A stretch of 64,000 bases of DNA from Paramoeba atlantica (lineage: Eukaryota > Protista > Discosea): NCBI GenBank assembly GCA_977017575.1, contig CDRNVI010000003.1, forward strand, positions 1 through 64,000. The letters are read 5' to 3'. Each line of letters begins with the position of its first letter. Position 1 is the stretch's first letter. The notes beneath the pieces were generated by a model. It was given only the letters and a program-made list of their open reading frames with translations. It did no database searches and had not been told where the DNA came from. This document shows, piece by piece, positions 4,160-60,736 of the stretch. Made by a program: the position numbers and the translations under genes.

Positions 4160-4634
4160 GTGATGGTTGGTTGGTTAGTTCAACGATTCGCGTTGGGTAT
4201 GCATGCCACGCAATGCCCGAGGTTTAGGACGGTGACGCGCAATCTTTCGGACCACTTTAGCAGGGTCACTGACTTGAACCGCACAGAGAACTACACCTGT
4301 AGAACGATAGGGGGGGGAAAGGAAGGGTTGTGTTCGTACGCTCCTCGTACCGAACGCGAAGCACACCTGACCACGATTCGTTCCTGAACAATGACACGTG
4401 CACCTCTTCAACTCTCCCCGTCAAAAGATAAAATCTCGAACAAGTCTCATATCTCCACGCAACCCGAAGCACTTGGCACCCAACCTTGGCAATCTTACAA
4501 ATCGCACGCACCGCCCTCTGGCGAAGTTTCGCAAGTCCCTCCCGTACTGGCGGACGAAAGATGACTCCCCAAACACGCTTGGTTCGGTAAAGGGTTTCAA
4601 AGGCCTCTGTCCCCGCGCCGGAAGCATTTGCCAT
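4160..4634 (-). pseudogene. N-terminal-domain fragment of a family-B-like LINE
   Basis: MANASGAGTEAFETL...AKLRQRAVRAICK...VAWRYE...LPFPP is homologous to the start of the 27375 ORF. Confidence 0.85.
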
Positions 4635-4639
4635 CTTTT

Positions 4640-5075
4640 TATAAAGGATTTATAGAAAGTGTGTTGAGGGAGATACGGAGTATCTAACTCGCTTACTAAG
4701 GTTAATTCCAAAACATGAAAATGCCCCTCAAAGAAGCGAGAGATCGAGTTTTTTCAAAATTTTAAAACGTAGCAGTAGCTCATTAGATGAACTCGTTAAT
4801 ACTCGAAAAATCATCTACAACAACCTCATTTCCCAAATTGTAGAACACTTTTGGTAAACAAAAGTGCGTCTGCAAAGGTCTGCGATGCGACAAACTGGTT
4901 GACTAAGGAGAGTCCTTTGAGTAGTCCAGTTGAGTAGTCCGGTTTTTCAGATTTTTTTTCTCTTGAAAAAAGTGGCCAGCTGGCCACCAAAAACACAGTT
5001 TGCATTTTGTATATAGAGAGAAAAATAATGTGCAGGTCCGAGTGGTACAGTGTGTAGCTACAGTGGCCCTTGAGA
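4640..5075. repeat. Dispersed repeat Y (TTGAGGGAGATAC end, tRNA-like segment partly deleted, TGGCCAGCTGGCCA palindrome)
   Basis: Inverted near-identical copy at 42375-42900 and a related copy at 51760-52250. Confidence 0.8.
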
Positions 5076-5656: not shown

Positions 5657-8600
5657 TCAGTGTTCGCTTGCCCTGGTAGGTGCCCGCATTTCGTGGTTTC
5701 TAGCGGGGGCGACGCTTTGCTTGGGCTGTTTGATTCCCGTCCGTAGACTACCGCGGCGACAATTGGCACTGGTGTTAGGGATCCTTGCTACCTCTGGCAT
5801 GCGAGGCTCGCAAAGGAGATCAGGATTTTGACCTTCGCTTGTCGCGGCGGAGGTTTCGCGCTTTTTCTTCGAAGGGTTGCGCGAAAGAGCTGCTTTGGCT
5901 ATTAAATCGCACTTCTCGTTGTAAATATTTCCGCAGTGACCTTTCACCTTAAAAACAAAAAGCTGCACACTACGCGCTTCTAAGCCTCGAAAAGCGTGTT
6001 CCAGATCCAAATATATAACGCTATTTGGAAGGCCTTCAAAACCAATAAAATAATACTTTTTTCTAATCACATTTGCAAAATGCCGAACTACCCAGGAATC
6101 CGTAGGCAGTATGATTCTTTCCCTATCTTGTGGTGCCCTTTGTATGGCTGTTAGTGCCGCATATAGTTCCGCCCTCTCCGGTGAGCCGCAGCTTAAAGTT
6201 TCCTTGCAAATGGCAAAGCTTGACACTTCCTTCCCACATTGTACTTCAACCATTCCCAGCCCCATTTTCCCAATAAACCCAGAACTCACCGATGCATCAG
6301 AATAAATATGTAAAGCACCTTCTTCGATTACAAATGGCGTGGTGCCTTCCTCCGCATACTGAAGATCCGATAAATTGGTATCCCGAAGTGCTGTTGAGGT
6401 AACCTTATGCCAACCTTTTCCCCGATAGCTCACGTATGTTTTCTTGCGCCCAAGGCTAGCTTGCAGATTCTCAACTTGGGTCTGCCAATATTTTCGATCC
6501 CCTGCATAGACCAATGCTTGTTCAATCATGATCCCCATATCGCCCATGCATATATCTCCGAATGTCTTATCAGGTGCCCTAGAGGTCGTGCCCGGTTTAC
6601 CTTATGTAGTGTGGAAAATAACGGTGTGTCAACGTAAAGGGCTGTAAGAGGTATACTTTTCCCACGGTGGTCCAATTTTTGGCAACGACATATGATGCGA
6701 CGCATTTTGTTTACCTGAATGTCTACCCAATTTAACGTTTTATCCGGCAATACAAGAGTACCTGAGTTATAGTTCAGAACGGGGTAAACCAGTGTATCGA
6801 AAAGGCGAAGTTTAGTTCTCACAGATAGTGGTAATATCCATATTCCTTGAAATTTTGAGAAGCTTGCCCATGTAAGCCGCACCCTGTACCTAATGCACGC
6901 CTTGGGGTCCTGTTCATGAAAAAGGTGCCCTAGGTAACGGTAACTCTCGACGTGTGGAACCTTTCCCAATGTATCGGATATTATTTCTTCGGTGTTGTTA
7001 TTTTTTCCTATGCTCATCCAGGCGGTTTTGGTGGGCCCAACAGCAATCTTTAAATTGGCAGCAAGGACTTGCTCTGCTGTATCTTCCATTATGCTTTGCA
7101 AGTCTTCCTTGTCGCTCCCAAATAGGAGCAAATCGTCAGCATAATTCAGATCAGTGAGCCGCGTTTCCCGTAACCCTCTGCTACTCGTACCCTTGTATGA
7201 TAATAAGATGCCGTGGGGTTTTGAATCTATTGCCTTAAATAATATTCGATCCAGGACCATAACAAAGAGGTACGGTGCGAGAACGTCGCCCTGTAGAATT
7301 CCTGTCGTGATGGGGAAAGCTTCCGTTAGCCCATACGGTGTACAAACGACGCCTCTCATATTGCGATAGACCGACATAATCATTTCTACTAGCTTGGGGC
7401 CAATGTGGAATGCTACCAGAGATGCCTTGATAGCATCAAACGAAACAGATGGAAAAGCCTTTGCAAAATCCACGAAACCAATGTTGAGCCCATTTTCCCG
7501 CAAAGCTTTAACTCTTGCTTCGTTGAGAATCGCCTGGGCTTGAGTTGTTGAGCGATCTGGTCGAAACCCATATTGATTCTCGCGAAGCACGGGCTCCACA
7601 TAACGTCTCATTCGTTGCAAGATTAAACTGTTCATTAGCTTGACGATGCAATTCACTAAGCAAATAGGTCGCCAGTTTTTAAGAAGACTCAAATCACCCA
7701 TTTTTGGTATAGGAACTTGTAAGACATCACCCCAAACATCCGGAGCCACCCCGGTATCGTGAACTCTGTTTATGACACATAGCAGCCAATCTCGAAGTAA
7801 CTCGTTACCAGCTATGCATTTCAAGGCTTCCATTGGGATTTCGTCTTTTCCTGGCGATTTTCCCCTACTAAAGTGTGAGATGCCAATTTGAAGCTCTTCT
7901 TCCGTAAAAGTGGAGTCGTTAATCGTGTTAGGGGATGGTTTGGCCTCAGGAAATTTTATATTCGTGTGCCCCCCGGCGTCTCCCGCAAAGGCTTCGAAGA
8001 ATGATTTGATTTCCGCCAGCTTTTGTTTATTACAGGTCCCTGAAATCTTAAAATCGGCGCGATGAACTCCACATATTTCTTTCAGAGCTCTCCATGGGCT
8101 GGCATGATTGTTCTTTAGTTTAGTTTCCAGGACATCACATGATTTGGCTATTGCTTCCTCTATTGGCACCTGTGTTTGTAAAACCAATTCATTGAAGTCC
8201 TTGTGCTTTCTGCTTAGCTCAAAGATTCTGCGCAAATAACCAGTTTCGGCTCCTTCGAGCGTTTCCATTGGCGAATCGATTTCAAGAGATATTTTGTTTT
8301 GTGGTTTCGGAATTTCCCTGCCAGACGATCGAAGGCAAGAGGCAAGTAGATCCCAGGAAGGGAAATCCTTGTTCTGCAGTTCGCCATTGACATGATCGCA
8401 GATTCGTTTGTTAAATTTTTCACTATCTTCTGGGTTAGAAAGTTGAAGCCATGGAATCTTATTTCTGTGGGTATTTGTGGAAACTTCCCATTTGATCTTG
8501 ATCCCGGCTCTCACCAGAAAGTGTACAGTTGGTGTTGGTGCGCCAAAAACTTGATGTTTATGTAGGGCAGACGCAAAGCGCGAACACACTGCAATGTGAT

Positions 8601-9708
8601 CGAGCTGTCGCTTAGCATCGTTCGGCAGTATACATGTATATTTACGGCGGCTTGGGCATAAGGTGTGCCCCGATTTACAATCTATTCCTTCTAAAAGGCC
8701 TTCTAATCTTTCCATTGATAGCGCGTCCTCTTCCGTCTTATTTTTAAAAGTGAGCGGTGCATTCAAATCTCCAAGGAGAAGAGCTGGCCGTCGTGAATAT
8801 TTACCAACTGCGTCATGAAACGCAGTGGTGAGAGAAATCTCAAACTCTTCCATTGCATCTTGTGAAGAATCGCGCGTCGGCCCATATACATTCATCATAA
8901 AGGCCGACCCCCCTTCTATAGTAAACTCGGCCCCTATGATCCTGTCACTCACCTTCCAAACCTTCAAAAACGGACGCTGAGAGATAAACCCCATACCGTT
9001 GTACCCATTCACCGCCGACAAAAGGTAGATGAAAAAGTGTTTATCTCCGTACCGTAGTTGCCTGCGCAAAATGTCAGACCCACCCCTAGAAGTCAAAGAG
9101 AATCTTGTTTCCTGTAAAGCCCGAACATGCAAATCTTTCTTAGCCATATATCGCAATGTTTCATGTAATCGGGAGGATGCTTTCAGTCTGAAAACGTCGT
9201 CGCCCTTAAGTTTCAACGAAGTCGTGTTAAGAGTTCCTATAGATAAATACTTCCTCAAAGCAGACCCTTCAGGGTCGTTGTCGCGAAGAGCATGCTTGCC
9301 ACACAGTGCCCTATTTTTACGTACTTTCTTTCGGGTATTCGAACGTCGAGGTTTCCGAATTCGCACCCCACACAGCACTATACGTGGGTCGTACGGCGGG
9401 AAAGGAAGCGTTTCCGATCGCCTGTAGTATTTCACCCGCCAGCGACCTAGCTGAAAGAGAGACCCATAGCCTCTCTGTGTGCCATCCTCCATCCAAACCC
9501 GATACTCAGCAGCCCCCGCATATCGCCAGCACAGCGCGATGCAGTCGCCAGGACGAAGAATTTTACATATTCTCATCACATTACGCAGGCGAAGTTTAGC
9601 ATGTCCATCAAAATCCAAAGTTGGTTCAAAAAGGACACCCCGACCTAACGTGGACCGTACTGGAAGATTCACTATACTCTTCTCGCAAGGCCCGGACGCC
9701 TTCGCCAT
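5657..9708 (-). mobile_element. Family-C non-LTR retrotransposon (N-domain, APE, RT, RNase H), with one deletion/frameshift after the RT
   Basis: ORF 6526-9708: LQETR, LLLGDLNAP, LDHI, WRPICLVN, QYGFRPDRST, DFAKAFPSV, GILQGDVLAPYLF, YADDL. ORF 5657-6547: HIYSDAS, ERAELYA, LPTDSW, KVKGHCGNIYNEKCD. Confidence 0.95.
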
Positions 9709-9722
9709 GTCTTTGAAGAATA

Positions 9723-18078: not shown

Positions 18079-18087
18079 ACATGTATA

Positions 18088-18129: not shown

Positions 18130-18159
18130 CATTTTCCCTTTAGTTCATCTTTTCTTTCC

Positions 18160-18590: not shown

Positions 18591-18619
18591 CATCCGTCAA
18601 TACGGATTGTGCCGATGAT

Positions 18620-18985: not shown

Positions 18986-19014
18986 CTCTATACCAAGGTC
19001 TTGAGCGCACGCTT

Positions 19015-19410
19015 CGAAAAAAAAAAAAAAAAATCCAAATCATTCCGGATTGCTCCGGATGGTTACTGGCAAGCCAGACCCTTCACAGACAGATTTGGAA
19101 GTTCCGAGGCCGACGTCCTCTACCAGTTTCCGCTTGTCCAAGGCGGCACCAACGTGCTGTTACCAACACGCTGCGTCGACGAACTGTACGTCAACACGGC
19201 TTACCCAAGAGGTGTAAGCCGGGTAAGGGAGCTGGTTCCCTGAGGGGAGGGTCCGGGACGGTCCTCCGAGTACTGGGCCTAGTCGGTTATCAGCCCAGCC
19301 TCTTAGAGTGAGGCCGCCAGGAATATTGCGATGAGCGGGTTTGAACTCGCCTTCTGAGCACCATGTGCTTCAAACTTTGAGTTCTTGCCACTCCGCCACC
19401 TCCGCTCTCC
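19015..19410 (-). mobile_element. Full-length ~390-nt structured SINE-like element
   Basis: Starts GAGCGGAGGTGGCGGAGTGG, ends ATCCGGAATGATTTGGA + T run; near-identical to the TSD-flanked copy at 12199. Confidence 0.88.
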
Positions 19411-21230: not shown

Positions 21231-21450
21231 TTGCCTTGCGCCTCCACCTTCCTCTATGGCCTTGCGTGTCACACACTTCCAGGTAAAGTTTGGCCTTTGT
21301 AGGTGTATTTGCGGAATATCGAGGGGAGGACCGTCCCGGACCCTCCCCTCAGGGAACCAGCTCCCTTACCCGGCTTACACCTCTTGGGTGAGCCGTGTTG
21401 ACGTGAATTCGTCGACGCAGCGTGTTCGCAACAGCACGTTGGTGCCGCCT

Positions 21451-21562
21451 TGATTTCTTCCTATTAAGTTGATTTCTTCCTATTAAGTTGATTTCTTCCT
21501 ATTAAGTTGATTTATTCCTATTAAGTTGATTTCTTCCTATTAAGTTGATTTCTTCCTATTAA
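21451..21562 (+). repeat. Tandem array of 6 x 19-bp unit (GTTGATTTCTTCCTATTAA) at the 5' end of family-F LINE
   Basis: Six units readable, one with a substitution; directly precedes the AEASGPF-type N-terminus. Confidence 0.92.
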
Positions 21563-23156
21563 TGAATATTTCTAGGGAGAAGGCGGAGGCGTCCGGACCT
21601 TTTGCCAGCTTGCTCTCGTTCAAAGAGAAGTTACGGAAGGCCACGTGTCAACGGGGAAACCTCTTTCTGCCTCCTCAGCGGAGAGAGGGAGTAGCGATAC
21701 TCCGGCAGCGGGCCCTGTGTCGAATGCAGTCACTTGTATGGTTCCGGGGAAGAGGTTCGTTATAACCTGGTGCAAGTCATATGAATATAGTACGAGGGTG
21801 TGGGAAGGTTCTGTTGTGTCGGTTGAACCGGACGGTTTTCAAATGGAAAACAGGGCCGTGGGCAGGTAAACATCAAAGGGTTACTTCCTCCAAGGAGGAA
21901 CAATTCGTAGAAGAGGGCGATGTGACGTTCAAAATTCGTGCAAATGAAATGCATTTATATACTGACGGGGCATTGTCTACAAAGAAAAATCAAATAGCAA
22001 CGGGATGTGCGTATGTATCGTTACGAGTTGGGAATCAAAAACTTATGGTAGGGATGCGCCCACCGGAAGATGTACCGCTTACCATTATGGCAGCTGAGGC
22101 GTATGGGGCATTTGCAGCATTGCAATTCACAATGGAATTTAATGGGGATGTTGTGTTGCATACTGATTCTCATAACCTCTGGGAATTTTTCCATATACAT
22201 AGGCATCAAAATCGCTTAGTTGGATTTCAGAAATTTGAGAATTCGGAACTGCTGAGACAGATTAGCCAGGCTTGTCATAAAATTGAGACTGATGCTAGAA
22301 ATGTGTACTGTATTAAAGTTCGAGCTCACGAAGGAAACCCATATAATGAGAGTGCTGATTTGGTGGCAAAAAAGGCAATTGATACAGTTGATATTGGCTC
22401 ATCATTTACTTATCGAGAACCCAAGGAGGTATCGAACGGTAAAAGAAAAGTTCCGAATTGTCCGGACAGAACGGTGCAAATACAGGAGAAAGTTTTAAAA
22501 TCGAATAGTATTTCTAGAAAATCACCCAAAACACCTATGAAAAAAGTCGTAATTACGGAACAAAAAAGGTCCAGAGAAAAGGAAGCTGAGCTGGGAAACA
22601 TTAAGGAACCTAAACTCAAGAAACGAAACAAGGCCTCTGAAGATAATTCACGTTCTGATAAGAAAATTATTCCAAAGGTTAAACTGCCACGGCATCCACA
22701 AATTAAACGAAAAGCCAACGAAGGCAAAAGCCAATCGCAGGCAGATGAGGAAGATAAATTGTCGAACTAACAGAATTTCTCGGTTGTGGGGTGAACGAGG
22801 GGTGGACAAGATTTTTGAAACAGTATTATTATTTATTTATATTTCAATCTAAAAGGTGTGAAACGAATCGACCTAGGTTTCCTGCTTATATGCGTTAATT
22901 TATTATATTTGTTAGTCTGTTTGTATTTGTATTTCATTTGTTGTCAAATTTGGAGGGAGAGGCATTGTTTGTAGAATTAGTTGAGTTTGTAGGTGCAAAG
23001 TTCACCGACGCATGCTAGGAAACGTGCTGCGTAGCCATTTTGATGGATTTACGGTACTTAAACAGGGCAAGTATCCCTTCACTTAATTGGAAACGGGGGG
23101 GGGGCAACTAGAGAGTGAAAGAGTACAAAGACCTCAACTGATATATCAGTGTTGTT
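21453..23156 (+). mobile_element. Internally deleted family-F LINE (array + N-domain fused to RNase H C-terminus + 3' UTR + (GTT)n tail), 15-bp TSD
   Basis: KAEASGPFASLL...AILRQRAL; ORF 21781-22770 has HLYTDGA, AAEAYG, LHTDSH, KVRAHEGNPYNESADLVA; flanking 15-bp direct repeat. Confidence 0.88.
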
Positions 23157-24239: not shown

Positions 24240-25150
24240 TAATTGCGGTGGTTGTAAAACTACCGCTCTACACTCGATTATTGAAAAAAAAGTGAACAAA
24301 AACAGTGAAAATATTAAGAGGAACACAGTAATATAATAGAAGAAAAAAATATAAAAGGGGGCTCCGGTGATCCAAAACTGAAAAAAAAAATTGAAAAAAA
24401 TGGGGGGTCCATGGGGGAGGTCCAGGGGGGTCCAGGGGGGGTCCAGGGGGGGGTCCAGGGGGGGGGTCATGGTCGAGCAAATTTTTTCGAAAAAATTAGT
24501 TTTCGAAACCAAACCGCAGAAAGGGTAGCCGGGGTCTTGGCGCGCATTTTCCACCCCCCTACCCGGGGGTAACCCCCCTGCGTATCCGCAGGAGGGGTCC
24601 GCCGAGTTCGAAATTGTTCGGATTTTTTTTTTGAAAACAATTTCAACTTGGCGAAAAAAATGACCAAAAAAATATTTTTCCAAAATCGTTTCCCCTATTG
24701 TATTTTGATAGTTTGGGACCTACAATAGCTTTCTCCGCAGTTGCTTTCGCAAGGTGTCCCTTCTTCGAACCGTGGTGCGCCCCTCAAAATAACCCATTTT
24801 TTGACTAAAAAAGGTGAAAAAGTATTTTTCGGACCTAAAGGGGCATTTGTGTGTCGAAAGAATGGTATGGTTGGAGTCGTCTTCTCTACCCAATACGTTC
24901 GGTAGGCTTCCATTCATGCCTACTAGTGATTTTCCACGCGCAAATGTCGGATTTAGTGCTCTGAGAGCAGAAATACGCGAAAATCACCCGATTTGTACCC
25001 GAAATTCGGCTATTTTTGGCTATAATCTTTCCGTTTTCCAGGCTAAATTTTCTTTTTTAGGCTACTCGTTAAACGCGGCGGTAGTTTTCAACGCGAAGCG
25101 CGCAGCATGAGTGACTTCTAAGTTGAAAACAACCACCGTGTTTAACGTTT
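24240..25150. repeat. Full-length hairpin-ended dispersed repeat (Helentron/HINE-like non-autonomous element)
   Basis: Begins ATTGCGGTGGTTGTAAAACTACCGC, has a variable GGTCCAGGGGGG tract, ends in a long GTTAAACGCGG...CCGTGTTTAAC palindrome. Confidence 0.85.
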
Positions 25151-25793
25151 AATGGCAATTAATAAATGGGCGGAGGCGTCCGGACCTTTTGGGGGTTTCT
25201 TGGCGGTCAAAGAAAAACTCCGATTGGCCACGTGTTGTCGGGGAAACCTGTTTCTACCTAAAAAGCGGAAATGGGGAGTAGCCAAACTCCGGCCGCGGGA
25301 CCTGTTTCGAATGTCATGTCTTTTTTCTCCTGGAAAACGCTTTGCTGTTGCCTGGAGTATGTCATATGATTTACGTACGAGGTTGTCGGAGGGGACTGCT
25401 AAATCTATACTTCCGGACGGTAGACGTCTAGTGAAGTATGATTTAGTGGATGATCGCCTTTTCCTGTTTCCTCCGAAAGATGAACGAGTTCAAATTCTGG
25501 GTGGTAGGGTAGGTTTCTTGGGAAAATGGAAATCCAAACGGAATAGGAAACGCACCAACTGTCCTCGAAGTGGCTACCGGGGCCAGGGATCCGAGAAGAA
25601 TGCTAAGAGAGGGGGTTTTACGATAAATACCCTAAACGTGGACACCTTGAAAGTCAAAGCGACTGATACTTTCACGCTTCGGAAGTCGATTAGACTATAT
25701 CAAGTGGCAGGTTTCATGAGGAGTCAACATGTTGACCTCATGGCGCTTCAGGAAACAAGGTTAAAATTTGATGATAAGGATTCTATTTTACAT

Positions 25794-27358
25794 ACCACTT
25801 TTTGTTTTAAGACCACTTTTTGTTTTAAGACCACTTTTTGTTTTAAGACCACTTTTTGTTTTAAGACCACTTTTTGTTTTAAGACCACTTTTTGTTTTAA
25901 GACCACTTTTTGTTTTAAGACCACTTTTTGTTTTAAGACCACTTTTTGTTTTAAGACCACTTTTTGTTTTAAGACCACTTTTTGTTTTAAGACCACTTTT
26001 TGTTTTAAGACCACTTTTTGTTTTAAGACCACTTTTTGTTTTAAGACCACTTTTTGTTTTAAGACCACTTTTTGTTTTAAGACCACTTTTTGTTTTAAGA
26101 CCACTTTTTGTTTTAAGACCACTTTTTGTTTTAAGACCACTTTTTGTTTTAAGACCACTTTTTGTTTTAAGACCACTTTTTGTTTTAAGACCACTTTTTG
26201 TTTTAAGACCACTTTTTGTTTTAAGACCACTTTTTGTTTTAAGACCACTTTTTGTTTTAAGACCACTTTTTGTTTTAAGACCACTTTTTGTTTTAAGACC
26301 ACTTTTTGTTTTAAGACCACTTTTTGTTTTAAGACCACTTTTTGTTTTAAGACCACTTTTTGTTTTAAGACCACTTTTTGTTTTAAGACCACTTTTTGTT
26401 TTAAGACCACTTTTTGTTTTAAGACCACTTTTTGTTTTAAGACCACTTTTTGTTTTAAGACCACTTTTTGTTTTAAGACCACTTTTTGTTTTAAGACCAC
26501 TTTTTGTTTTAAGACCACTTTTTGTTTTAAGACCACTTTTTGTTTTAAGACCACTTTTTGTTTTAAGACCACTTTTTGTTTTAAGACCACTTTTTGTTTT
26601 AAGACCACTTTTTGTTTTAAGACCACTTTTTGTTTTAAGACCACTTTTTGTTTTAAGACCACTTTTTGTTTTAAGACCACTTTTTGTTTTAAGACCACTT
26701 TTTGTTTTAAGACCACTTTTTGTTTTAAGACCACTTTTTGTTTTAAGACCACTTTTTGTTTTAAGACCACTTTTTGTTTTAAGACCACTTTTTGTTTTAA
26801 GACCACTTTTTGTTTTAAGACCACTTTTTGTTTTAAGACCACTTTTTGTTTTAAGACCACTTTTTGTTTTAAGACCACTTTTTGTTTTAAGACCACTTTT
26901 TGTTTTAAGACCACTTTTTGTTTTAAGACCACTTTTTGTTTTAAGACCACTTTTTGTTTTAAGACCACTTTTTGTTTTAAGACCACTTTTTGTTTTAAGA
27001 CCACTTTTTGTTTTAAGACCACTTTTTGTTTTAAGACCACTTTTTGTTTTAAGACCACTTTTTGTTTTAAGACCACTTTTTGTTTTAAGACCACTTTTTG
27101 TTTTAAGACCACTTTTTGTTTTAAGACCACTTTTTGTTTTAAGACCACTTTTTGTTTTAAGACCACTTTTTGTTTTAAGACCACTTTTTGTTTTAAGACC
27201 ACTTTTTGTTTTAAGACCACTTTTTGTTTTAAGACCACTTTTTGTTTTAAGACCACTTTTTGTTTTAAGACCACTTTTTGTTTTAAGACCACTTTTTGTT
27301 TTAAGACCACTTTTTGTTTTAAGACCACTTTTTGTTTTAAGACCACTTTTTGTTTTAA
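25794..27358 (+). repeat. Homogeneous tandem array of ~87 x 18-bp unit (GACCACTTTTTGTTTTAA) at the 5' end of the intact family-B LINE
   Basis: No variant unit seen over ~1565 bp; ends 16 nt before the ATG at 27375. Confidence 0.97.
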
Positions 27359-27374
27359 TTTACTTTAGAACAAA

Positions 27375-30300
27375 ATGGCGGATGCTTCCGGCACGCATGG
27401 GGGGACAGAGGTTTTTGAAACCCTTATGCGGACCAAGCGTGGTCGGGGGGTAGTCTTTCGTTCGCCTGAACGAGAGGGTCCTGCTAAACTCCGCCAGAGG
27501 GCGGTCCGGTCGCTTTGTAAATTTATACGTGTTGGGGCTTTTATCCGTGTTGCATGGAGGTATGAAACCTCTTCTGAAGTCTTTATTTGGGATGGTGAAG
27601 TTGTGGGTGGGGTGCCGGCGAGTCTACAAAATTTCGACTGGGCAAATACAAGTCCTATTTGGCACAATCACTTATCTGGTGCATTTCGTGTTCGATACGC
27701 AAAAAGGCCGAACACAACCTTACCCTTCCCCCCTTATTCGCAAACTGGCGTAGTGCTTTGTGCAACGCAGGTGAGGAACCCGGCGCGGGCAAAATGGAAG
27801 AGCAATCGGCACCGCCCTCGACCACAATGGGCGTCGACTGGCAAACACGCCCAACAAGATTCGGAGAACCACAAAGGTTCCGCTGAGAAGGAGAGTACGA
27901 CCGTCGCCACACTAAACGTTACAACGTTAAAGCTAGAAGGGGAAGATGAATTTGCACTTCGAAGATGCGCCCGTCTGAATGAGGTGCTTGCCTTCATGCA
28001 CGAAAAGGGGGTTGGCGTCATGTGCCTTCAGGAGACCAGGCACAAATTCTTGAAGGGGAACCATGAGGATGGAATCCTCTACAGAAAGGTTGAAAACCTA
28101 GGGGAGTGTTTTCACATATATCTGCAGTCGGCCGACGAACGTGATTCTTATAACGGCATGGCAATAATTAGTAGATGGCCGTTTCAAAAAGTCTGGATGG
28201 TTAGCAAAAGGGTCATGGGAGCGGAGTATCCCCTGGAAGATGGGAAGGGCACACTGTTTAATGTCTATTCCCCAACGCGGGACTCCTTAGAAGCCGTTCA
28301 TGCGGCATTTCTGGGGGACTTGGGCAAGGCTTGTCGCGAGGTCAAGGCTCACGAGAGGCGTCGGCCTTTATTGGTAATGGGTGATTTCAATGCACCACTA
28401 ACGCTGGTAACAAATCCAACCATGGATCCTCCAGCGATCTCTCAGCTTAAAGGCCTACTATGCTCTATTGGATGCAAGTCGGCACATACTCTCTGCCCGA
28501 GTAAAAGAAAATGGACATGCGAGTTGCCGGGCAAGAGGAAGGGGAACTTAGACAATCGCGGGAATCGAACGGAAAGAAAATTAGGGAAAATGAACGGAGA
28601 TACGCAAACATGTGAAACGCAAGGTTTGGATCTACAAGCAGATGCCATAGGACAAGAGAGCATTTTGAAGAGGGATAGGGATAATGAGGGGGTAGGGGGG
28701 AAAATTTCTAGGAGCCAGGAAGATAAAAGAAACAAGATGGGAAAACACAAGAAGGATGACAACAAGGTGCGGAGACAGCTTGATCATATACTGGTTTGCG
28801 AAAGGTTTTCCTCTAGCATTGGGCGTCACAAAGTCTTAAAGGCGCCTGTTCCTACGGTACATTGTGTCGTGATGGCGGATGTAAAAATTAAGTGGCGTTC
28901 TAAACGACCAAGCGGGCAGAGCAGAGTGCCATGGGCCAGGCTAGGGGACGAGGAGAGGAAGGCTTCCTTCCAAAACTCAGTTTGGGACGAGGTTAAAAGA
29001 GAAGGAGAGATTACATGGGAAAATTTATCAGAAACAATGGTTCACACTGCAGAAAAACTATCGAGAAAAGGAGCAGCGACACCGCAAGCGCAATTAATGG
29101 CAGAAACACCGATGAAAATTAATACGGAAACAAAATCGTCTCAAATTTCAGGATTTCGCGACTTGTTTCTGCAAAGCAGAAAACCAGACCACTTCAAAGA
29201 AGTTCTAAAAGAGCACGGAACAGAAATTGAGGCACAAATCCAAAAAGAATGTTCCGAGATTGAATCTGGTTTAAGGAAACATCGGTCTAATCCGTGGCGC
29301 ACGCTGCGGAGGATTTGCGGTTTATACAGGGACACCTTTCGCATAGAGACCTCATCGACGAGAGAGACACTTCATATTGTGAAGGATTTCTTTGCTCGTA
29401 TGGGCTCCGATGATCGTGGAGATAAGAACATTGCCTTCGAAGCGGTGACCTCCATTAAAATACCGATAAATGATGATATCTTTTCCATGGAAGAGCTAGA
29501 AGATGGAATAAGCCGGCTCGCACGCAACAAAGCGCCTGGAATAGACCAAATCCCTGCAGAAGTACTTTCGATTATCACGGAACACAAGGATCTGAGAAAC
29601 GTACTGTTAAATATCATCAATGAAGTTCACCGTTCAGGGGTTTCGCCTGCGTCCTGGAAATTTGTCCTTCAGGTTCCTATTCCTAAAAAAGGCGACCTGA
29701 CACAAATTTCGAACTGGCGCCCAATCTGCCTCGTCAATAGCGCGGTAAAATTAATGAACGCAATGATTCTTCGAAGAATGAGACCAGCCATTGAACCGTT
29801 TCTAAGGGATAGTCAATTCGGATTTCGCCCGGAAAGGTCCACAGCAGGAGCGCAGATAATACTTAATGATGTGAAGATAAGGTCGTCGCGCAACAAGAGG
29901 GGGGTCGCAGTTGCATTCATGGATTTTGCCAAAGCCTTTCCTTCGGTATCTTTTTATGCAATCCGTGCTGCTCTTAAAGCTTTTCACGTCGGATCAGCGC
30001 TCACTAGTATGATAATGTCAGTGTATTCCAATCTAAGAGGCATAGTCAAAACACCGTACGGCAATACGGAATCTTTCCCCATTGAAACAGGAATTCTCCA
30101 GGGAGATGTTCTTGCTCCTTATTTGTTTGTGCTTGTTATTGACAGAATTCTTCATAAAGCGCTCGATAACAAACCTCTAGGGATTCTGTTGAGGAGCAGC
30201 GGGACAAAAAGTAGGGGAATTCAAGAATTTCGAGTGAAGGACATTGATTACGCAGACGATATTGCTCTTCTGGCGGAGACAAAACATGAAATATCCGAAA

Positions 30301-31976: not shown

Positions 31977-32624
31977 AAATCGGTCTTATTGGATTGGATT
32001 GGATTTGGAATCTCACTTCACCTCTACCTGATGAGTGCAATCAACGGGTACAATGGCATGGCATTTTTGAGCACTAAACCTCTATCTGTTCAGAAGATTA
32101 GCGATCGCATTATGAGTGGACACTTCATTCTAGGTGAAACGAAAGCCTGCATTTACAACGTCTATTCACCTACAGCGAAAGCTAGCAAATCGACGCAACA
32201 AAGTTTTGACGAAGACTTATTCGATGCACGGTATGACGATGATAGTATGGTAAGAATCATTAGTGGAGATCTAAATTCGTCGCTACTCAACCCAGGGGGG
32301 AGAAAATGTTAAACAAAGCGTGCAAAACAGTTACGAAAGCTACCATGCTCGCTTGGAGCTCAATCTGTACATGAAGGCTGTTGTGCAAGAAGAAAATGGA
32401 CGTATAGGTTTCCTAAAACGCGTCGGTATCCAGAGGGAATGACCAAGCAACTTGACCACATCGTTGTTAACAAAAGGTTTTTCTCTTCTATACGACCCAC
32501 GAAATGCCACATCGCACCAATACCTACGAGACATTGTGCTTTGACATCGAACTTCAATTTTCGATGGAAAATTCAAAAACTGTCTCAACAAAAACCTTTT
32601 TGGGAGGCATTGAAAAATGATGAA

Positions 32625-32805
32625 AATCACCCGATTTGTACCCGAAATTCGGCTATTTTTGGCTATAATCTTTCCGTTTTCCAGGCTAAATTTTCTTTTT
32701 TAGGCTCTTCGTTAAACGCGGCGGTAGTTTTCAACGCGAAGCGCGCAGCATGAGTGACTTCTAAGTTGAAAACAACCACCGCGTTTAACGAAGAGCCTAA
32801 AAAAG
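32625..32805. repeat. Partial hairpin-ended dispersed repeat (long terminal palindrome end)
   Basis: AGGCTCTTCGTTAAACGCGG...CCGCGTTTAACGAAGAGCCT. Confidence 0.85.
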
Positions 32806-34925: not shown

Positions 34926-35210
34926 CCCGTCACATAATAACACCACGCACTGTAACGTATGCGATGCCCGATCGCATAAGATGCCCGATCGCATATTTAT
35001 TTTATGCGTGCATATTTTTCCCGTGCATTTCGCGTACTTTGTGCCATTGGGGGTACCGCATCGTCTGGCCCCTCAAACTGATAAACAATGTTTCTAATGG
35101 AAGCTTTGCAAGGATGCAGGCAACCTAATCTGTTAAATGCGGCAAAAACAACATACGGACATTTTTTATAAGAACACACTTTTTATAAGGAACACACCTT
35201 TTATAAAGAA

Positions 35211-35407
35211 CAGATTGAAAGGGGCGAGGGAGATACGAAGCAACAGGCGTGGCAGATTCCCAATGAAAAGAAATGGTATCTCCCCGCACGAGAAAAGCCT
35301 TCGCGCTTTCTAGCTCGGAGACAAACTTCGTGCGGGAGATACCATTTCTTTTCAGTGGGAATCTGCCACGCCTGTTGCTTCGTATCTCCCTCGCCCCTTT
35401 CAATCTG
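35211..35407. repeat. Near-perfect ~200-bp foldback (arms ~80 bp) containing GAGGGAGATAC
   Basis: CAGATTGAAAGGGGCGAGGGAGATACGAAGCAACAGGCGTGGCAGATTCCC... is mirrored with 2-3 differences. Confidence 0.9.
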
Positions 35408-36369: not shown

Positions 36370-37300
36370 ACTCAACGTGAGTCACTGCCCCACGTGGCAG
36401 TACACTTACTCTCTCACGTGCCACTGTATCTACACTGCAGTCACTGCCTCACGTGACACTAGTCTTGCTCTCGCACGTGCCAATGCAGCTGCACTGCGAT
36501 CACTGCCTCACGTGGCAGTACTCTCACTCTCTGACGTGCCACTGTAAGTAGAGTGCCGATGCAGTCACTGCCCCACGTGGCAGTAATCTTACTCTCTCAC
36601 GTGCTACTGCAGCTACACTGCAGTAACTGCCTCACGTGGCAGTACTCTCACTCTCTCACGTGCTACTGCAGCTGCACTGCATCACTGCAGTTACTGCCTC
36701 ACGTGGCACTGCCTGTCACTCTGCCACTGTATCTACACTGCAGTCACTGCCTCACGTGGCAGTACGCTTACTCTCTCACGTGCCACTGCAGCTACACTGC
36801 AGTCACTGCCTCACATGGCAGTAATCTTACTCTCTCACGTGCCACTGTAGCTACACTGCAGTCACTGACTCTCTCACATTCCACTGTATCTACACTGCAT
36901 TCACTGCCTCACGTGGCAGTAATCTTAAGCTCGCACGTGCCGCTGGAGCTGCGCTGCATCACTGCAGTCACTGCCTCACGTGGCAGTAATCTTACTCTCT
37001 CACGTGCCACTGCAGCTACACTGCAGTAACTGACTCTCTCACATTCCACTCTATCTACACTGCATTCACTGCCTCACGTGGCAGTAATCTTACTCTCGCA
37101 CGTGCCGCTGCAGCTTCGCTGCATCACTGAAGTCACTTCCTCACGTGGCACTACTCTTACTCTCTCACGTGCCACTGCAGCTACACTGCATCACTGCAGT
37201 CACTGCCTCAAATGGCAGTGTTCTCTGGCACGTGCCGCTGCAGCTGCACTGCATCACTGTGCAATCACTGCCTCACGTGGCACTGCTCTCACTCTCTCAC
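36370..37300. repeat. Degenerate ~59-bp CACGTG/CTGCAG minisatellite, inverted relative to 5045-5560
   Basis: Recurrent CACTGCAGTCACTGCCTCACGTGGCAGTAATCTTACTCTCTCACGTG units. Confidence 0.88.
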
Positions 37301-40300
37301 TCACTCACTCACTTTACACTAAGCCCCGGAATAGGGCGTTAGTTAAATATCTATCTGTATTTACGCTCAATACATTCATCATCTAACTCTCCAACTGATT
37401 TCGTTTTCACGTCGATTGCCTCGTACTCGGTGCGCTTCGAAAGCGAAACACACAGCACCCTGCGTACACTGGATTTTGTTGTCCCATCTTGGTTTCCGTC
37501 AAAGGGGATATTTTTCCGCGTTATGAGGTCGCGTCTCGTGGTCTACCTTTCTTGGTGCGGTTCGCGGAGGTACTTAATTGTGAGCCAGGCGCGGGGAAAT
37601 GCTGTGATAAGTGCCGTTCTAGTGTAGTAGCCGAGGTCTTGCGCCTTTTCTATGAAAGAGCGCCGAAAAGAGCTGTCTTTGCCAACGTGTCACACTTATC
37701 GTTTTATGGGTTGCCGCAATGCCCCTTTACTTTAATCACGTAGAATTTGACGCCATTCTCCTCTAAGGTCTTTATTGCACCACCTAAATCCCAATAAATG
37801 TCGCTGTTTGGAAGGCCATTGTATCCTATTAGGTAATACTTTCGCCGCGTATTGCGTATAAAATGCCATACTATCCACGAATCCGTATGCAGTACGATTG
37901 TACCCTCAACTTTGGGTGCTCTCTGAATAGCTAGTAGTGACGCATAAAATTCCGCTCTTTCTGGCGATGGTGTGCCAAGAATATCCTTACAAACAGTAGG
38001 ACTAGCCACTTCATGGCCACACTGAACTTCAACAATCCCAATTCCAATCTTTCCGATGTAACCAGAACTAACTGAGGCGTCGGTATAAAGGTGTAGAACG
38101 TTGTTGTCACTTAAGAAAGGTGTTGGACCTTCTTCAGCGTACTGCAGGGCTGAAAGATCATTTTCCCGCTGCGCAGCAGCTGCAATGCGGTGCCAACCGC
38201 TTGATCTATAACCAATATACATTTTAGGATTCTCTAGCCCCATTTGAAGTTTTTCAACATGTTTTTGCCAACATTTTCTATCCTCCGCATATACCAGGGC
38301 TTCCTCGACTACTAGTTCCATATCCCCGGTGCAAGCTTCGGATGGAGAACGAATTCGACTCTTTTCTTTAACGCGCCACTGCATCAGTTCCGAATATATC
38401 TCTGAATGCCGTATTAAGTGTCCTACAAGACGAGCCCGGTTAACTTTGTGCAGTGTGGAAAAAAGTGGGGTGTCTATATATAAGGCGGGTATTGGCACAC
38501 TTTTCCCAGAATGATCCAGTTTCGGACACTTACAAATAATACGACGCATCTTATTTACATGTATATCTACCCATTTCAATGTGGTTTCGCTCAACACTAT
38601 TGTGCCCGAGTTGTAATTTAGGATAGGGTATACGAGGGCACCGAACAAACGAAGTTTTGTCTTGACGCTCAAGGGCGATACCCATATGCCCCGAAATTTT
38701 GAGAAACCTGCCCACGTAAGTCGCAACCTGTCCCTAATACATGCCAATGGTTCAGTTTCATGGAAAAGATGTCCCACATACCTATAGGAAAGTACTTTGG
38801 GAACCGTCCCCAAAGGATCGGATATCATTTCATCGGGGCCTCGTTGCCTTCCTAGTTGCATCCACGCTGTTTTAGCAGGGCCTACTGCTATTCTTAGGTT
38901 CGCGGAGAGGGCTTGTTCCGCTGTATCCTCAATCATACTCTGTAGATCAGCCTTGTTATCTGAAAAGAAAAGGAGATCAGCATAATTTAGATCCGTGAGA
39001 CGTGTTTCCCTCAGGCCTCTGCTCTTGGTAGTCTGCTCGATCAACTCCACATATTTCTTTTACTGCTCTCCATGGGCTGGCGTGATTTTTCTTCAGCTTA
39101 GATTTTAGGACTTCACAAGACCTAGTTATAGCATCCTCGATTGCTCCCCTGTTGTGTGATACTAGTTCATTAAAGTCCTTATGCCTTCTGCTTAGCATGA
39201 AAATGTTGCGTAGGTTATCTGTTTCAGCACCTTGCGATCCTTCAACAGGTGCCTTTATATCAAGAGATATTTTTGTGATTGGTTTCAGAATTTCCTTTCC
39301 CGAAGATCGAAGGCAAGAGGCAAGAAGATCCCAGGAAGGAAGATCTTCTGTATGCAGTTGCGCTGCGACCTGTTCACAAATTCTGTTGTTAAACTTCTCT
39401 GCATGTTCTGGTTTCGATATCTTCCATTTGATTCGAATCTCTGCTCGCACAAGATAGTGCTCTGTCGGCGTAGGGGCGGCAAAAACTTGATGATGTCGCA
39501 GAGCGGATGCAAAGCGTGAGCACACTGCAATGTGATCCAACTGGCGTTTAGCATCATTAGGCAATATGCATGTCCATACTCGCTTGCTAGGGCATAAGGA
39601 GTGTCATGATTTGCAATCTATCCCTTCCAAAAGCCCCTTCAACCTTTCAACAGCAAGTTCGTCTTCTTCTGTCGTTTTGCTGAAAGTGAGAGGTGCATTT
39701 AAGTCCCCAAGTAGAAGTGCGGGTCTTCGGGGGGCTTTGCCTACTGCTTCGTGAAACGCGTTTGTCAAAGAAATATCAAACTCTTGTTTGGCCTCCTCTG
39801 GGGAGTCACGCGTCGGCCCATATGCGTTGAGCATAAAGGCTGACCCTCCTTCGATGTTGAACTCGCCGGCCATTATCCTATCATTTACTTTCCACGCCTT
39901 TATTGGCTCTTGCGTGATGAACCCCATACCGTTATACCCGTTCACTGCAGACATAAGGTAGATGAAAAAGATTTTATTCCCGTGTCGAAGCTTGCGCTTT
40001 AAAATATCAAATCCTTCGCCAGAAGTAAAAGTAAACCTTGTCACCTGGAGAGCCAGTATATGCAAGTTGGTTTGTGCCATGTATCGCACAATCTCGTGCA
40101 ATCGAGCAGAAGCTTTCAGTTTGAAAACGTCGTCACCTTCAAGTTTCAATGATGTCGTATTAAGAGTGCCTACAGCCAGACACTTCTTCACAGCAGACCC
40201 TTTCGGGTCGTCGTCGCGTAGGGAATGCTTGCCACACAGTACCCTAGTTTTCCGTGCTTTTCTACGGTTGTTCGAACGCTCAGGTTTTCGAATGCGTGCT

Positions 40301-40641
40301 CCGCATAACACGATTCGCGAATCATACGGCGGAAAGGGAAGCGTTTCCGATCGCTGGTGGTACTTTACCCGCCAGCGAACTAGCTGAAAGAGGAAACCAG
40401 GTCCTCGTTGAGTTACAGTGCCCTTCCAAATCAGAAACTCCGCACTGCTCGCGTATCTCCAGCAGAGTGCGATGTGGTAACCTGGGCGAAGAATTTTACT
40501 AATGCTCATCACTGCACAGGGGCGAAGTTTAGCATGCCCGTCTGACCCCAACATCGGGTCAAACAGAGCACCCCGACCTAACGTGGACCTAACCAGAAGG
40601 TTAATAATTCCTAGCTGTGCAGGCCCGGACGCCTCCGCCAT
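37300..40641 (-). mobile_element. Second family-C LINE copy, RT core deleted (junction ~39040), with 3' UTR and (TGAG)n tail
   Basis: ORFs 39604-40827, 38977-39564 and 37704-39050 align with the 5657-9708 copy; ATG at 40641. Confidence 0.92.
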
Positions 40642-40654
40642 ATTTTTGAAAATG

Positions 40655-42363
40655 TTCAAAAAAACAAAGGTCTTCAAAAAAACAAAGGTCTTCAAAAAAA
40701 CAAAGGTCTTCAAAAAAACAAAGGTCTTCAAAAAAACAAAGGTCTTCAAAAAAACAAAGGTCTTCAAAAAAACAAAGGTCTTCAAAAAAACAAAGGTCTT
40801 CAAAAAACAAAGGCCTTCAAAAAACAAAGGTCTTCAAAAAACAAAGGTCTTCAAAAAAAAAAAGGTCTTCAAAAAAACAAAGGTCTTCAAAAAAACAAAG
40901 GTCTTCAAAAAAACAAAGGTCTTCAAAAAAACAAAGGTCTTCAAAAAAACAAAGGTCTTCAAAAAAATAAAGGTCTTCAAAAAAACAAAGGTCTTCAAAA
41001 AAACAAAGGTGTTCAAAAAAACAAAGGTCTTCAAAAAAAACAAAGGTCTTCAAAAAAACAAAGGTCTTCAAAAAACAAAGGTCTTCAAAAAACAAAGGTC
41101 TTCAAAAAAACAAAGGTCTTCAAAAAAACAAAGGCCTTCAAAAAACCAAAGGTCTTCAAAAAACCAAAGGTCTTCAAAAAAACAAAGGCCTTCAAAAAAA
41201 CAAAGGTCTTCAAAAAAACAAAGGCCTTCAAAAAACCAAAGGTCTTCAAAAAAACAAAGGTCTTCAAAAAAACAAAGGTCTTCAAAAAAACAAAGGTCTT
41301 CAAAAAAAACAAAGGTCAAGAAAACAAACATCTTCAAAAAACCAAAGGTCTTCAAAAAACCAAAGGTCTTCAAAAAAACAAAGGTCTTCAAAAAAACAAA
41401 GGCCTTCAAAAAACCAAAGGTCTTCAAAAAACCAAAGGTCTTCAAAAAAACAAAGGTCTTCAAAAAAACAAAGGTCTTCAAAAAAACAAACATCTTCAAA
41501 AAACCAAAGGTCTTCAAAAAACCAAAGGTCTTCAAAAAAAAAAGGTCTTCAATAAAACAGAGGTCTTCAAAAAACAAAGGTCTTCAAAAAAAAAAAGGTC
41601 TTCAAAAAAACAAAGGTCTTCAAAAAACAAAGGTCTTCAAAAAAAAAAAGGTCTTCAATAAAACAAAGGTGTTCAAAAAAACAAAGGTCTTCAAAAAAAC
41701 AAAGGTCTTCAAAAAAACAAAGGTCTTCAAAAAAACAAAGGTCTTCAAAAAAACAAAGGTCTTCAAAAAAACAAAGGCCTTCAAAAAAACAAAGGTCTTC
41801 AAAAAAACAAAGGTCTTCAAAAAAACAAAGGTCTTCAAAAAAACAAACATCTTCAAAAAAACAAAGGTCTTCAAAAAAACAAAGGTCTTCAAAAAAACAA
41901 AGGTCTTCAAAAAAACAAACATCTTCAAAAAAACAAAGGTCTTCAAAAAAACAAAGGCCTTCAAAAAACCAAAGCTCTTCAAAAAAACAAAGGTCTTCAA
42001 AAAAACAAAGGCCTTCAAAAAAACAAAGGTCTTCAAAAAAACAAAGGTCTTCAAAAAAAACAAACATCTTCAAAAAAACAAAGGTCTTCAAAAAAACAAA
42101 GGTCTTCAAAAAAACAAAGGTCTTCAAAAAAACAAAGGCCTTCAAAAAAACAAAGGTCTTCAAAAAAACAAAGGTCTTCAAAAAAACAAAGGTCTTCAAA
42201 AAAACAAACATCTTCAAAAAAACAAAGGTCTTCAAAAAAACAAAGGTCTTCAAAAAAACAAAGGTCTTCAAAAAAACAAAGGTCTTCAAAAAAAACAAAG
42301 GTCAAGAAAACAAACATCTTCAAAAAACCAAAGGTCTTCAAAAAACCAAAGGTCTTCAAAAAA
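40655..42363 (-). repeat. Tandem array of ~95 x 18-bp unit (sense GACCTTTGTTTTTTTGAA), heterogeneous, at the 5' end of the second family-C LINE
   Basis: Same unit as 9723-10086 with recurring variants (GGCC, AACC, CATC); probable 9-bp TSD ACTCTCTCA at 37291-37299 and 42364-42372. Confidence 0.95.
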
Positions 42364-42374
42364 ACTCTCTCAAG

Positions 42375-42900
42375 GGCCACTATAGCCACACACTGTACCA
42401 CTCGGACCTGCACATTATTTTTTTCTCTACATATATACAAAATGCAAACTGTGTTTTTGGTGGCCAGCTGGCCACTTTTTCGAGAAAAAAAAATCTGAAA
42501 AAATCGTTCCGAATTTGTTGTTTTTGCGATTTTGAGCATATAATTTTTTTTGTTCAAAAATGTCGATGCCGGGAATCGAACCGCGGACATCCAGCGTCAA
42601 AATGGAACCCCTTTACCAACTGGACTACTCAAAGGACTCTCCTTAGTCAACCAGTTTGTCGTATCGCAGACCTTTGCAGACGCACTTTTGTTTACCAAAA
42701 GTGTTTTACAATTTGGGAAATGAGGTCGTTGTAGATGATTTTTCGAGTATTAAAGAGTTCATCTAATGAGCTACTGCTACGTTTTAAAATTTTGAAAAAA
42801 CTCGATCTCTCGATTCTTTGAGGGACATTTTCAAGTTTTGGAATTAACCTTATTAAGCGAGTTAGATACTCCGTATCTCCCTCAACACACTTTCTATAAA
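42375..42900. repeat. Dispersed repeat Y, inverted copy of 4640-5075
   Basis: Reverse complement matches 4640-5075 and retains the tRNA-like segment. Confidence 0.85.
42560..42634 (-). pseudogene. Degenerate tRNA-derived segment inside repeat Y
   Basis: A-box-like TAGTCCAGTTGG and B-box GGTTCGATTCCC at tRNA spacing; acceptor and T stems do not pair properly. Confidence 0.55.
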
Positions 42901-42914
42901 TCCTTTATAAAAAG

Positions 42915-43115
42915 ATGGCAAATGCTTCCGGCGCGGTAAATGGGACAGAGGCCTTTGAAACCCTTTACCGAACCAAGCGTGTTTGGGGAGTCATCTTTCG
43001 TCCGCCAGTACGGGAGGGACTTGCGAAACTTCGCCAGAGGGCGGTGCGTGCGATTTGTAAGATTGCCAAGGTTGGGTGCCAAGTGCTTCGGGTTGTGTGG
43101 AGATATGAAATATAC
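42915..43115 (+). pseudogene. LINE N-terminal fragment, inverted duplicate of 4430-4634
   Basis: MANASGAVNGTEAFETLYRTKRVWG...VVWRYE. Confidence 0.85.
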
Positions 43116-60660: not shown

Positions 60661-60736
60661 ATGGTGTATTTGCGAATAATACGTGTATTGCGAATAATAA
60701 AAAAAATGCGAATAATATCTGTATAGTTGGTTTAAA

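Follow-up and report, generated by a model that had tools for sequence, protein, structure and literature searches.

Why should a retrotransposon be preceded by a long and perfect tandem array of its own first nucleotides? The question is raised by the stretch analyzed here, a 64,000-nt window of the Paramoeba atlantica assembly GCA_977017575.1 (contig CDRNVI010000003.1, positions 1 to 64,000 of the forward strand), in which an intact long interspersed nuclear element (LINE), referred to as family A, carries 87 units of 18 nt shortly before its open reading frame (ORF). Coordinates without a prefix refer to this window; identifiers beginning with L denote other contigs or loci, and those beginning with P denote proteins. 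An earlier note on this DNA had proposed that the RNase H of the element measures out the unit and that its reverse transcriptase (RT) copies it over and over. From comparisons across related LINE families, we suggest instead that the arrays are probably a tandemly repeated 5′-terminal module, composed of the 5′ strand of a first helix (P1) and one arm of a hairpin, of a ribozyme-like RNA domain.

The family A element agrees with the earlier description of about 87 invariant copies ending 16 nt before the ATG of an intact APE-RT-RNase H ORF. Tandem Repeats Finder (TRF) reports 86.9 copies of an 18-nt unit with 100% matches and zero indels, which in the phase of the element correspond to 86 identical copies of GACCACTTTTTGTTTTAA and a distal-most unit lacking only its first G. 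After the 16-nt gap, the ATG at 27375 opens an uninterrupted ORF with Pfam matches to Exo_endo_phos, RVT_1, and RNase_H (Table 1). Alignment of its RNase H with E. coli RNase HI shows that all four catalytic residues (DEDD) are kept, and the best solved-structure matches of its RT are the R2 proteins, on a par with L1 ORF2. No zinc finger was found in the family A protein by Pfam at E ≤ 0.001; among the relatives, P0006 (L006) has a PHD finger after the RNase H (residues 1290-1338), and the others have no zinc-finger match. The array length is not an artifact of a single assembly, because the locus also has 87 units in L026, an independent assembly with more errors (ENA analysis ERZ24900291; 99.74% identity, 2 mismatches, and 31 gaps over 13.5 kb), in which single-base deletions are the only differences in the array. 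An exact search of the contig collection for the family A protein returned no record, and no sibling copies were gathered; P0159, considered as a sibling copy, was rejected since the near-identical match is the identical locus in the other assembly. At the 3′ end, relatives of family A have a similar stem-loop followed by AGGAT tails. More generally, each family has its own 3-7-nt microsatellite tail, which in close families follows a conserved stem-loop overlapping the stop codon.

As had been claimed, the element includes the array, which is anchored on the 5′ terminus. The clearest case is family B2, a minus-strand LINE whose insertion site is a composite repeat with two uninterrupted paralogues, one in L001 and the other at approximately 4940-5060 of the window. 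In the alignment to these empty sites, neither of which contains an array, ACTCTCTCA occurs once, and at the filled site it flanks both sides of the 3′ tail, LINE, and array, so that a 7-9-bp target-site duplication encloses the LINE together with its array. For family A itself, the earlier note had stated that an older host LINE reads through on both sides of the insertion. The APE frame of this older LINE indeed stops at 25793 and resumes near 32010 with orientation and order kept, but no target duplication is seen, approximately eight codons may be missing compared with other families, and no second copy of the APE region was found that could serve as an empty site, which makes the evidence weaker than that for B2. 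Together, these data support the conclusion that the arrays come in with, or grow out of, the LINE insertion. They also bear on three readings in which the array would have an origin outside the element, namely a pre-existing satellite targeted by the LINE, an assembly artifact, or spliced-leader relics stacked by repeated retroposition. Assembly of long perfect arrays is difficult, and site-specific LINEs in repeats as well as relic leader stacks are known elsewhere. However, the B2 empty sites have no array and the array lies on the 5′ side only, enclosed by the target duplication; two assemblies agree on 87 units, and in four other samples, short-read contigs break off within arrays of this kind; and the units differ by family in one genome. 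All three readings are consequently regarded as extremely improbable.

Around the older LINE, a 169-bp direct repeat (98% identical; 24979-25147 and 32622-32790) flanks the 3′-truncated fragment. The repeat belongs to a multi-copy element ending in a long hairpin, with approximately 10 copies in the window, and represents either an unusually long duplication or a recombination product.

Short 5′ arrays with a unit of 17-19 nt occur in at least 10 related LINE families, some of them from four other metagenomes, which bears out the narrow unit length noted earlier. Within one genome, the number of head-to-tail units per copy ranges from 1 to approximately 96. Other contigs of the same organism contain arrays directly before the start of a homologous ORF with 26.5, 59, and 4.9 units of 18 nt and 13.9 units of 17 nt, and over 145 kb of this genome, 12 tandem arrays have a period of 18 and 9 have a period of 19, a sharp peak against the one to four arrays found per neighboring period. 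A metagenome scan for relatives yielded 17 loci (N-terminus in two); the array-bearing relatives in four other metagenomes have 31-38% protein identity and lie on short-read contigs. Of the five short-read contigs with an N-terminus, four start within a perfect array of 18- or 19-nt units, probably because the assembler broke there. The claim that the layout recurs in the window holds for two minus-strand 18-nt arrays (families B1 and B2) and one 19-nt array (Table 1), but no tie to the LINE 5′ array layout was found for a 20-nt, 2.1-copy array (57953-57994) or for a short interspersed element (SINE). Young arrays are perfectly or nearly homogeneous (87 of 87, 58 of 59, 12 of 13, and 22 of 26 identical units). 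The distal end of the array falls within 1 nt of a unit start in five of eight long-read arrays (chance of approximately 7e-4 for two of 18 phases, by our own arithmetic), and three arrays start with a partial unit. Nearly every unit ends with a T-rich run and then (A)AG, and the ATG lies 0-16 nt behind the array. A literature search of open papers found no earlier description of a short 5′ tandem-repeat layout in LINEs.

The evidence that carries our interpretation comes from an alignment reaching from the last unit to approximately 165 nt downstream, first for eight sequences from seven families and then extended to 11 with three distant relatives (32-35% protein identity). The first 5-6 nt of the unit are complementary to a hexamer approximately 80 nt downstream, located before an invariant GGGG at ORF codons 21-23, and P1 begins at the first base of every unit. 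Unit starts of GACCAC, GAACAC, GATCAA, and GACCT are matched by downstream partners of GTGGTC, GTGTTC, TTGATC, and AGGTC, respectively; the unit hexamers GGGTGT, GGAAAA, GTTGAT, and GTCTTT by ACACCC, TTTTCC, GTCAAC, and GAAGAC; and a unit with GCCGT by GCGGC. Changes on the coding side of this pairing alter the amino acid. In all 10 array-bearing families, the unit carries the complement of its own P1 3′ strand, amounting to 7-8 different helices, with shuffle p-values of 0.0002-0.16 per family and a Fisher-combined value of p < 1e-8 (our own arithmetic) for families that are not fully independent. No matching hexamer was found near the array-less copies (a family A relative without an array, the older LINE, and two copies with spliced-leader relics). 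In the eight-sequence alignment, 92.5% of the cells are paired compared to 33-47% in slid controls, none of 500 shuffles reaches the score, 15 pairs are changed on both sides, and P1 has three pair types at one position. The 11-sequence alignment gives 88.9% compared to 30-48%, again with none of 500 shuffles reaching the score.

The rest of the domain is structured as well. Beyond the P1 strand, the T-rich portion of the last unit is paired to the leader of 13-16 nt, and RNAalifold identified three more covarying helices. P1 starts from nucleotide 1 and is followed by a hairpin in J1/2, by P2, which closes the domain, and by P3, P1.1, P4, and GC-N-AA before the 3′ strand of P2. In family A, P3, P1.1 (an invariant CC/GG pair), a stem-loop insert, P4, and the GC-N-AA junction, likewise invariant, lie between P1 and P2; the CC in L3 and the GG after P1 are invariant in 11 of 11 sequences. 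The helices form a nested double pseudoknot in the order known from the hepatitis delta virus (HDV) ribozyme, and every helix is backed by compensatory changes. The single-sequence minimum free energy fold of family A (-73.3 kcal/mol, z = -5.4) holds both P1 and the leader hairpin in its optimal structure, and a covariance model of the core (R1), built from natural 5′ domains, identified 22 copies in 232 kb. We infer that GC-N-AA corresponds to the catalytic cytosine and adenosines of J4/2 and CC/GG to P1.1, and a place for the 5′ domain in the HDV-like ribozyme class is plausible.

Several points weigh against this interpretation. The families share ancestry, so the shuffle counts overstate independence; P1 is merely 5 bp long in B1/B2 and L004; and the cores of L010 and L007 score weakly (approximately 25 bits). 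No HDV-type family of Rfam matched the window at its gathering score, nor did any match 27200-27750 at E ≤ 10. The domain is also not compact at P3/L3, where a covarying stem-loop of approximately 45 nt takes the place of a canonical loop of approximately 7 nt, and J1/2 is long. Given the L3 insert and the long J1/2, the domain need not be active, and its fold could instead have a function in, for example, translation or the binding of proteins. Moreover, a repeated ribozyme module alone leaves the origin of 87 identical units unexplained: if P1 favors the nearest unit, most RNAs would carry few units, and arrays of 59-96 units would then need a process of addition.

Table 1. Features of the window and of related loci. 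Strands refer to the sequence as read; P1 and P2 are predicted helices.
Feature	Position	Strand	Evidence or remark
Family A 5′ array, 87 units of 18 nt; unit = P1 5′ strand (first 6 nt) + 5′ arm of leader hairpin, as predicted	25794..27358	+	TRF; same count in L026
Family A 16-nt leader, last unit to ATG	27359..27374	+	3′ hairpin arm, pairs with T-rich part of last unit (J1/2 hairpin)
Family A ribozyme-like 5′ RNA domain	27341..27498	+	Covariation; fold; covariance-model match of 120 bits
Family A P1	27341-27346 with 27439-27444	+	
Family A P2	27377-27382 with 27490-27495	+	
Family A ORF, uninterrupted, 1533 aa	27375..31976	+	APE 194-346, RT 769-999, RNase H 1255-1397
Family A 3′ end, short stem-loop overlapping stop codon, then pentanucleotide TGGAT-like tail	31977..32009	+	
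Older LINE, upstream piece (N-terminus, start of APE)	25152..25793	+	Own array-less 5′ domain at 25166-25296
Older LINE, downstream piece (rest of APE)	32010..32621	+	Start approximate
Family B1 5′ array, 20 units of 18 nt, modal unit GACCTTTGTTTTTTTGAA	9723..10090	-	14 nt before ATG at 9708
Family B1 body	5852..9722	-	APE/RT/RNase H homology; coding region broken by at least 2 frame changes
Family B2 5′ array, ~95 units, modal unit as in B1 (GACCTTTGTTTTTTTGAA)	40655..42365	-	Distal end is a partial unit
Family B2 body	37300..40654	-	GTGA-type 3′ tail; at least 2 frame changes and one internal deletion compared to B1
B2 target-site duplication, left copy ACTCTCTCA, 7-9 bp	37291..37299	.	Empty paralogous sites; 2 nt ambiguous with array
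B2 target-site duplication, right copy ACTCTCTCA	42364..42372	.	Abuts distal array end
19-nt array, 5.9 units, GTTGATTTCTTCCTATTAA in the phase of the element, of a LINE 5′ fragment	21450..21562	+	
5′ RNA domain of the fragment bearing the 19-nt array	21580..21709	+	P1 3′ strand GTCAAC pairs with unit start GTTGAT
Family E 5′ fragment, single unit + 5′ domain	42883..43109	+	5′ domain at 42915-43038
Second family E 5′ fragment, single unit	4517..4650	-	Upstream neighbor as at the 42883 copy
3.1 family-E-like units without LINE body	35159..35212	+	Foldback element next
3′ ends with microsatellite tails	31967-32009; L001:13690-13745; L002:12560-12598; L004:5810-5865; L005:4395-4420; L006:4555-4585; L007:4795-4822; L010:4080-4107		
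Spliced-leader-like relics at 5′ ends of retroposed sequences	18080-18130 (+); L028:7626-7665 (-), ~18560-18605 (+); L006:40-68		

By analogy with the ribozyme of L1Tc/ingi, the 5′ domain would cleave itself just 5′ of the first G of a unit, which would free the element RNA from read-through transcripts in a host with polycistronic transcription. The array may then be considered a row of interchangeable P1 strands and predicted cleavage sites, and could be kept as a buffer that protects an indispensable 5′ strand from 5′ erosion during copying. A unit made up of the P1 strand and a hairpin arm would explain why its length is held at 17-19 nt while its sequence drifts, as helix lengths are conserved. 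Similarly, the arrays would be in phase with the terminus of the element because each unit is a P1 strand and a predicted cleavage site, and five of eight arrays would start at a unit boundary because the predicted cut lies at each unit start.

If the unit is a structural module, its fixed length needs no ruler. This bears directly on the mechanism of the earlier note, in which RNase H shortens the template to a 5′ remnant of 18-20 nt for recopying by the RT, so that the arrays arise de novo and the unit length equals the distance from the polymerase site to the RNase H. Such trimming would be in line with the 87 identical units of the youngest copy, with a unit that is the terminus of the element, with a family A RNase H that looks catalytically intact, and with U-rich units that would give a weak RNA:DNA hybrid. 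However, a perfect 19-nt array of at least 6.5 units precedes the intact APE-RT ORF of L010, which has a stop codon where RNase H would begin and its 3′ tail immediately after. No RNase H was found in L010 in six frames by Pfam, tblastn, or a profile of five natural RNase H segments; positive controls were found. Conversely, L006 has an RNase H but no array, and the recurrent variants and duplicated multi-unit block of the B2 array are not expected from the recopying of a single remnant. Because an LINE without RNase H carries such an array, the ruler is unsupported, and we consider this mechanism very unlikely.

As for how units are added, reiteration by the RT and unequal exchange at the DNA level are both candidates, and exchange has left traces in the old B2 array. 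This array contains eight recurring unit variants and two copies of a block of at least seven units, approximately 49 units apart, and its eight units nearest to the ORF are uniform; with its recurrent variants and block duplication, it is not a decayed perfect array. This pattern favors a scheme in which arrays are inherited via RNAs cut at distal units and change in length at the DNA level only (slippage and unequal exchange), with selection for length. Units of 17 and 19 nt that occur within 18-nt arrays, and the three arrays that open with a partial unit, as from 5′ truncation in a transcribed array, fit the same scheme. On the other hand, 87 units without one substitution would require a very recent sweep, old arrays show that homogenization in place is inefficient, and nothing in the scheme gives a reason for duplication to begin exactly at the first base of the element. 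We regard it as possible rather than likely.

The same guarded judgment applies to the RT as the agent of lengthening, which could realign on a multi-unit template or jump to freed one-unit RNAs and add whole units in phase without any RNase H ruler. This proposal concerns only the lengthening of arrays and is compatible with a repeated ribozyme-like module. It would suit the homogeneity of young arrays, the wide variation in unit number within one genome, and the whole-unit phase at both array ends. It would also suit the identity of the modal units of B1 and B2, whose bodies are merely 67-72% identical, and it follows from this sharing that the unit is either strongly constrained or exchanged between families. 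The 3′ microsatellite tails of LINEs are attributed to slippage at initiation, and the same enzymes leave the family-specific 3-7-nt tails here. Because of these tails and the homogeneous young arrays, reiterative copying at the 5′ end is a live possibility, although the B2 block duplications would require another process or long back-jumps, and no parent-daughter pair, unit gain, or free unit RNA was observed. A more specific form is that the RT rebuilds the 5′ end of each copy by telomerase-like reiteration over one-unit RNAs released by the domain, thereby creating in-phase P1 modules de novo. This version is rather doubtful; if true, RT reiteration at the 5′ end would be a dedicated solution to the problem of 5′-end erosion in LINEs.

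The host is probably a Perkinsela-like kinetoplastid endosymbiont of Paramoeba atlantica. The nucleus of the amoeba itself is a less likely source. A sister contig carries an elongation factor 1-alpha gene identical to a EukProt entry of Paramoeba atlantica. Pointers to a kinetoplastid include long intron-less genes, a PWWP-TFIIS gene, and spliced-leader relics with a kinetoplastid core motif, and the only full-length named relative of a RecQ4-like helicase ORF (62044-63975, minus strand) is from a prokinetoplastid (36% identity). Such a genome is reported to be rich in ingi-type LINEs and leader fragments (PMC5601477). An ingi-like Perkinsela protein in the supplement of that study has an N-terminal start quite unlike that of the LINEs described here, and the published Perkinsela leader primer (PMC5601477, Methods) has no match in the window at ≤ 3 mismatches. 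A related spliced-leader relic was located via the core motif (core CAGTTTCTGTA). One of the relics (Table 1) sits within a minus-strand LINE (17713-21162), and another directly follows a poly(A) run and opens an intact LINE ORF of 1627 aa, with the 5′ RNA core approximately 800 nt further in. Evidently, some LINE copies were made from trans-spliced mRNAs, and those are without a unit array. A derivation of the units from the spliced leader was rejected, as ungapped alignment to the relic matches at best 9-12 of 18 positions, with shuffle p-values of 0.12-1.0.

In such a host, the units might also be regulatory signals, either a tandem internal promoter like the monomers of mouse L1 and Pr77 or a row of trans-splice acceptors. 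The T-rich run and (A)AG at nearly every unit junction and the ATG 0-16 nt behind the array are suggestive in this respect, as kinetoplastid mRNAs need trans-splicing, and Pr77 of L1Tc is both promoter and ribozyme (PMC3383444). Nevertheless, signals of this kind would not explain why the unit start covaries with a hexamer in the coding region. Moreover, spliced leader and units were never found joined in one copy, and the copies capped by a spliced leader have no units. As the sole explanation, a regulatory role is unlikely; a promoter or trans-splice-acceptor function may instead add to the ribozyme-like role rather than rival it.

Further arrays and repeats are present in the window and on related contigs. 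The 19-nt array at 21450-21562 was considered as part of the adjoining minus-strand LINE, which was rejected as the covariance model places a plus-strand core next to it. Short arrays with a period of 18-20 nt and 2-7 copies, several of them perfect, are located at 51654-51694, 52369-52411, 55284-55329, 55973-56022, 57953-57994, and 60664-60699, and no recognizable LINE 5′ core adjoins any of these six. L003 contains 19-20-nt arrays (5368-6825), in which one 19-nt unit adjoins differing breakpoints of another repeat, and L005 has an 18-nt array of a different unit after its 3′ tail, perhaps the start of a neighboring element. A satellite of 59-67-nt CACGTG-rich units (5056-5558, 36380-37300, and L001:3044-3941) adjoins a repeated composite with a tRNA-like fragment (e.g., 42560-42640 and 51930-51990), which abuts the starts of family E LINEs at three places; no tRNA genes were found in the window. 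G-run/TCCA microsatellites with 11-13-nt units lie inside a repeated element (24402-24465, 52568-52626, L001:7849-7891, and L003:7840-7897). L001 (ERZ24900291 ctg3719c; 28 kb), flagged as circular, is a head-to-tail repeat with a 10.7-kb period and nested LINE copies, and probably represents segmental duplication in tandem instead of a true circle. Other ORFs of the window encode a Helitron-like N-terminal domain (10100-11725, plus strand), a Merlin/IS1595-type transposase with a SWIM finger (47344-48597, minus strand), and a pogo-type DDE_1 domain (53771-54982, plus strand).

Among known systems, the closest parallel is found in trypanosomatids, in which L1Tc/ingi and their derivatives start with Pr77, an HDV-like ribozyme that cuts 5′ of +1 and thereby frees the element RNA (PMC4035085, PMC3383444). 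The elements described here share with the bearers of L1TcRz/Pr77 (L1Tc/ingi, NARTc, and SIDER; PMC4035085, PMC3383444) a kinetoplastid host and a single ORF with APE, RT, and RNase H, a combination expected of the ingi/L1Tc clade. In each case, the very 5′ end forms an RNA structure in which P1, P2, P3, P1.1, and P4 follow in HDV-like order, and the cut predicted here would likewise lie 5′ of +1. However, Pr77 is single, compact, and approximately 77 nt long, whereas the domain described here extends over approximately 160 nt as far as 40 codons into the ORF and contains an L3 stem-loop, a J1/2 hairpin, and a P1-strand module repeated 1 to approximately 96 times. In R2 and other LINEs, HDV-like ribozymes process the 5′ end of co-transcribed RNA, and these R2-type ribozymes are likewise double pseudoknots starting at the first base of the element. 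They are single-copy and are detected by structure descriptors, in contrast to a domain with a multiplied P1 strand and no Rfam match. To our knowledge, tandem multiplication of a ribozyme P1 strand has not been described.

The variable number of tandem 5′ units resembles the monomers in the 5′ untranslated region of mouse L1, which are thought to preserve 5′ function despite truncation-prone copying (PMC6454616, PMC9022269). Those monomers are promoter units of approximately 200 bp that usually number few, as opposed to 17-19-nt RNA-structure modules in up to approximately 96 copies, and how mouse L1 regains monomers is an unresolved question (PMC6454616, PMC9022269). A third comparison is with the 3′ tails of stringent-type LINEs and telomerase-type copying, in which an RT adds short units in register at a template end. 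The elements described here do carry such 3′ tails after a stem-loop; their arrays, however, lie at the opposite, 5′ end and have a unit of 18 nt, and the RT is a candidate for their authorship.

LINEs lose 5′ sequence on copying, yet they must keep what defines and processes the start of their RNA. The arrays provide a natural system in which sequence, structure, and copy number are readable together, and in which 5′ ends may be either buffered passively or rebuilt actively. Unit and pairing partner co-evolve across families with 30-40% protein identity, and the 17-19-nt arrays may also serve as a marker that breaks short-read assemblies at these LINEs. In the best-supported reading, the arrays represent a variant form of the 5′ ribozyme known as a hallmark of LINEs in kinetoplastids, to which the repetition of the P1 strand and the covariation of the unit with its partner would be new. 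A greatly altered form of the 5′ ribozyme hallmark of trypanosomatid retroposons would thereby also be present in early-branching and free-living kinetoplastids.

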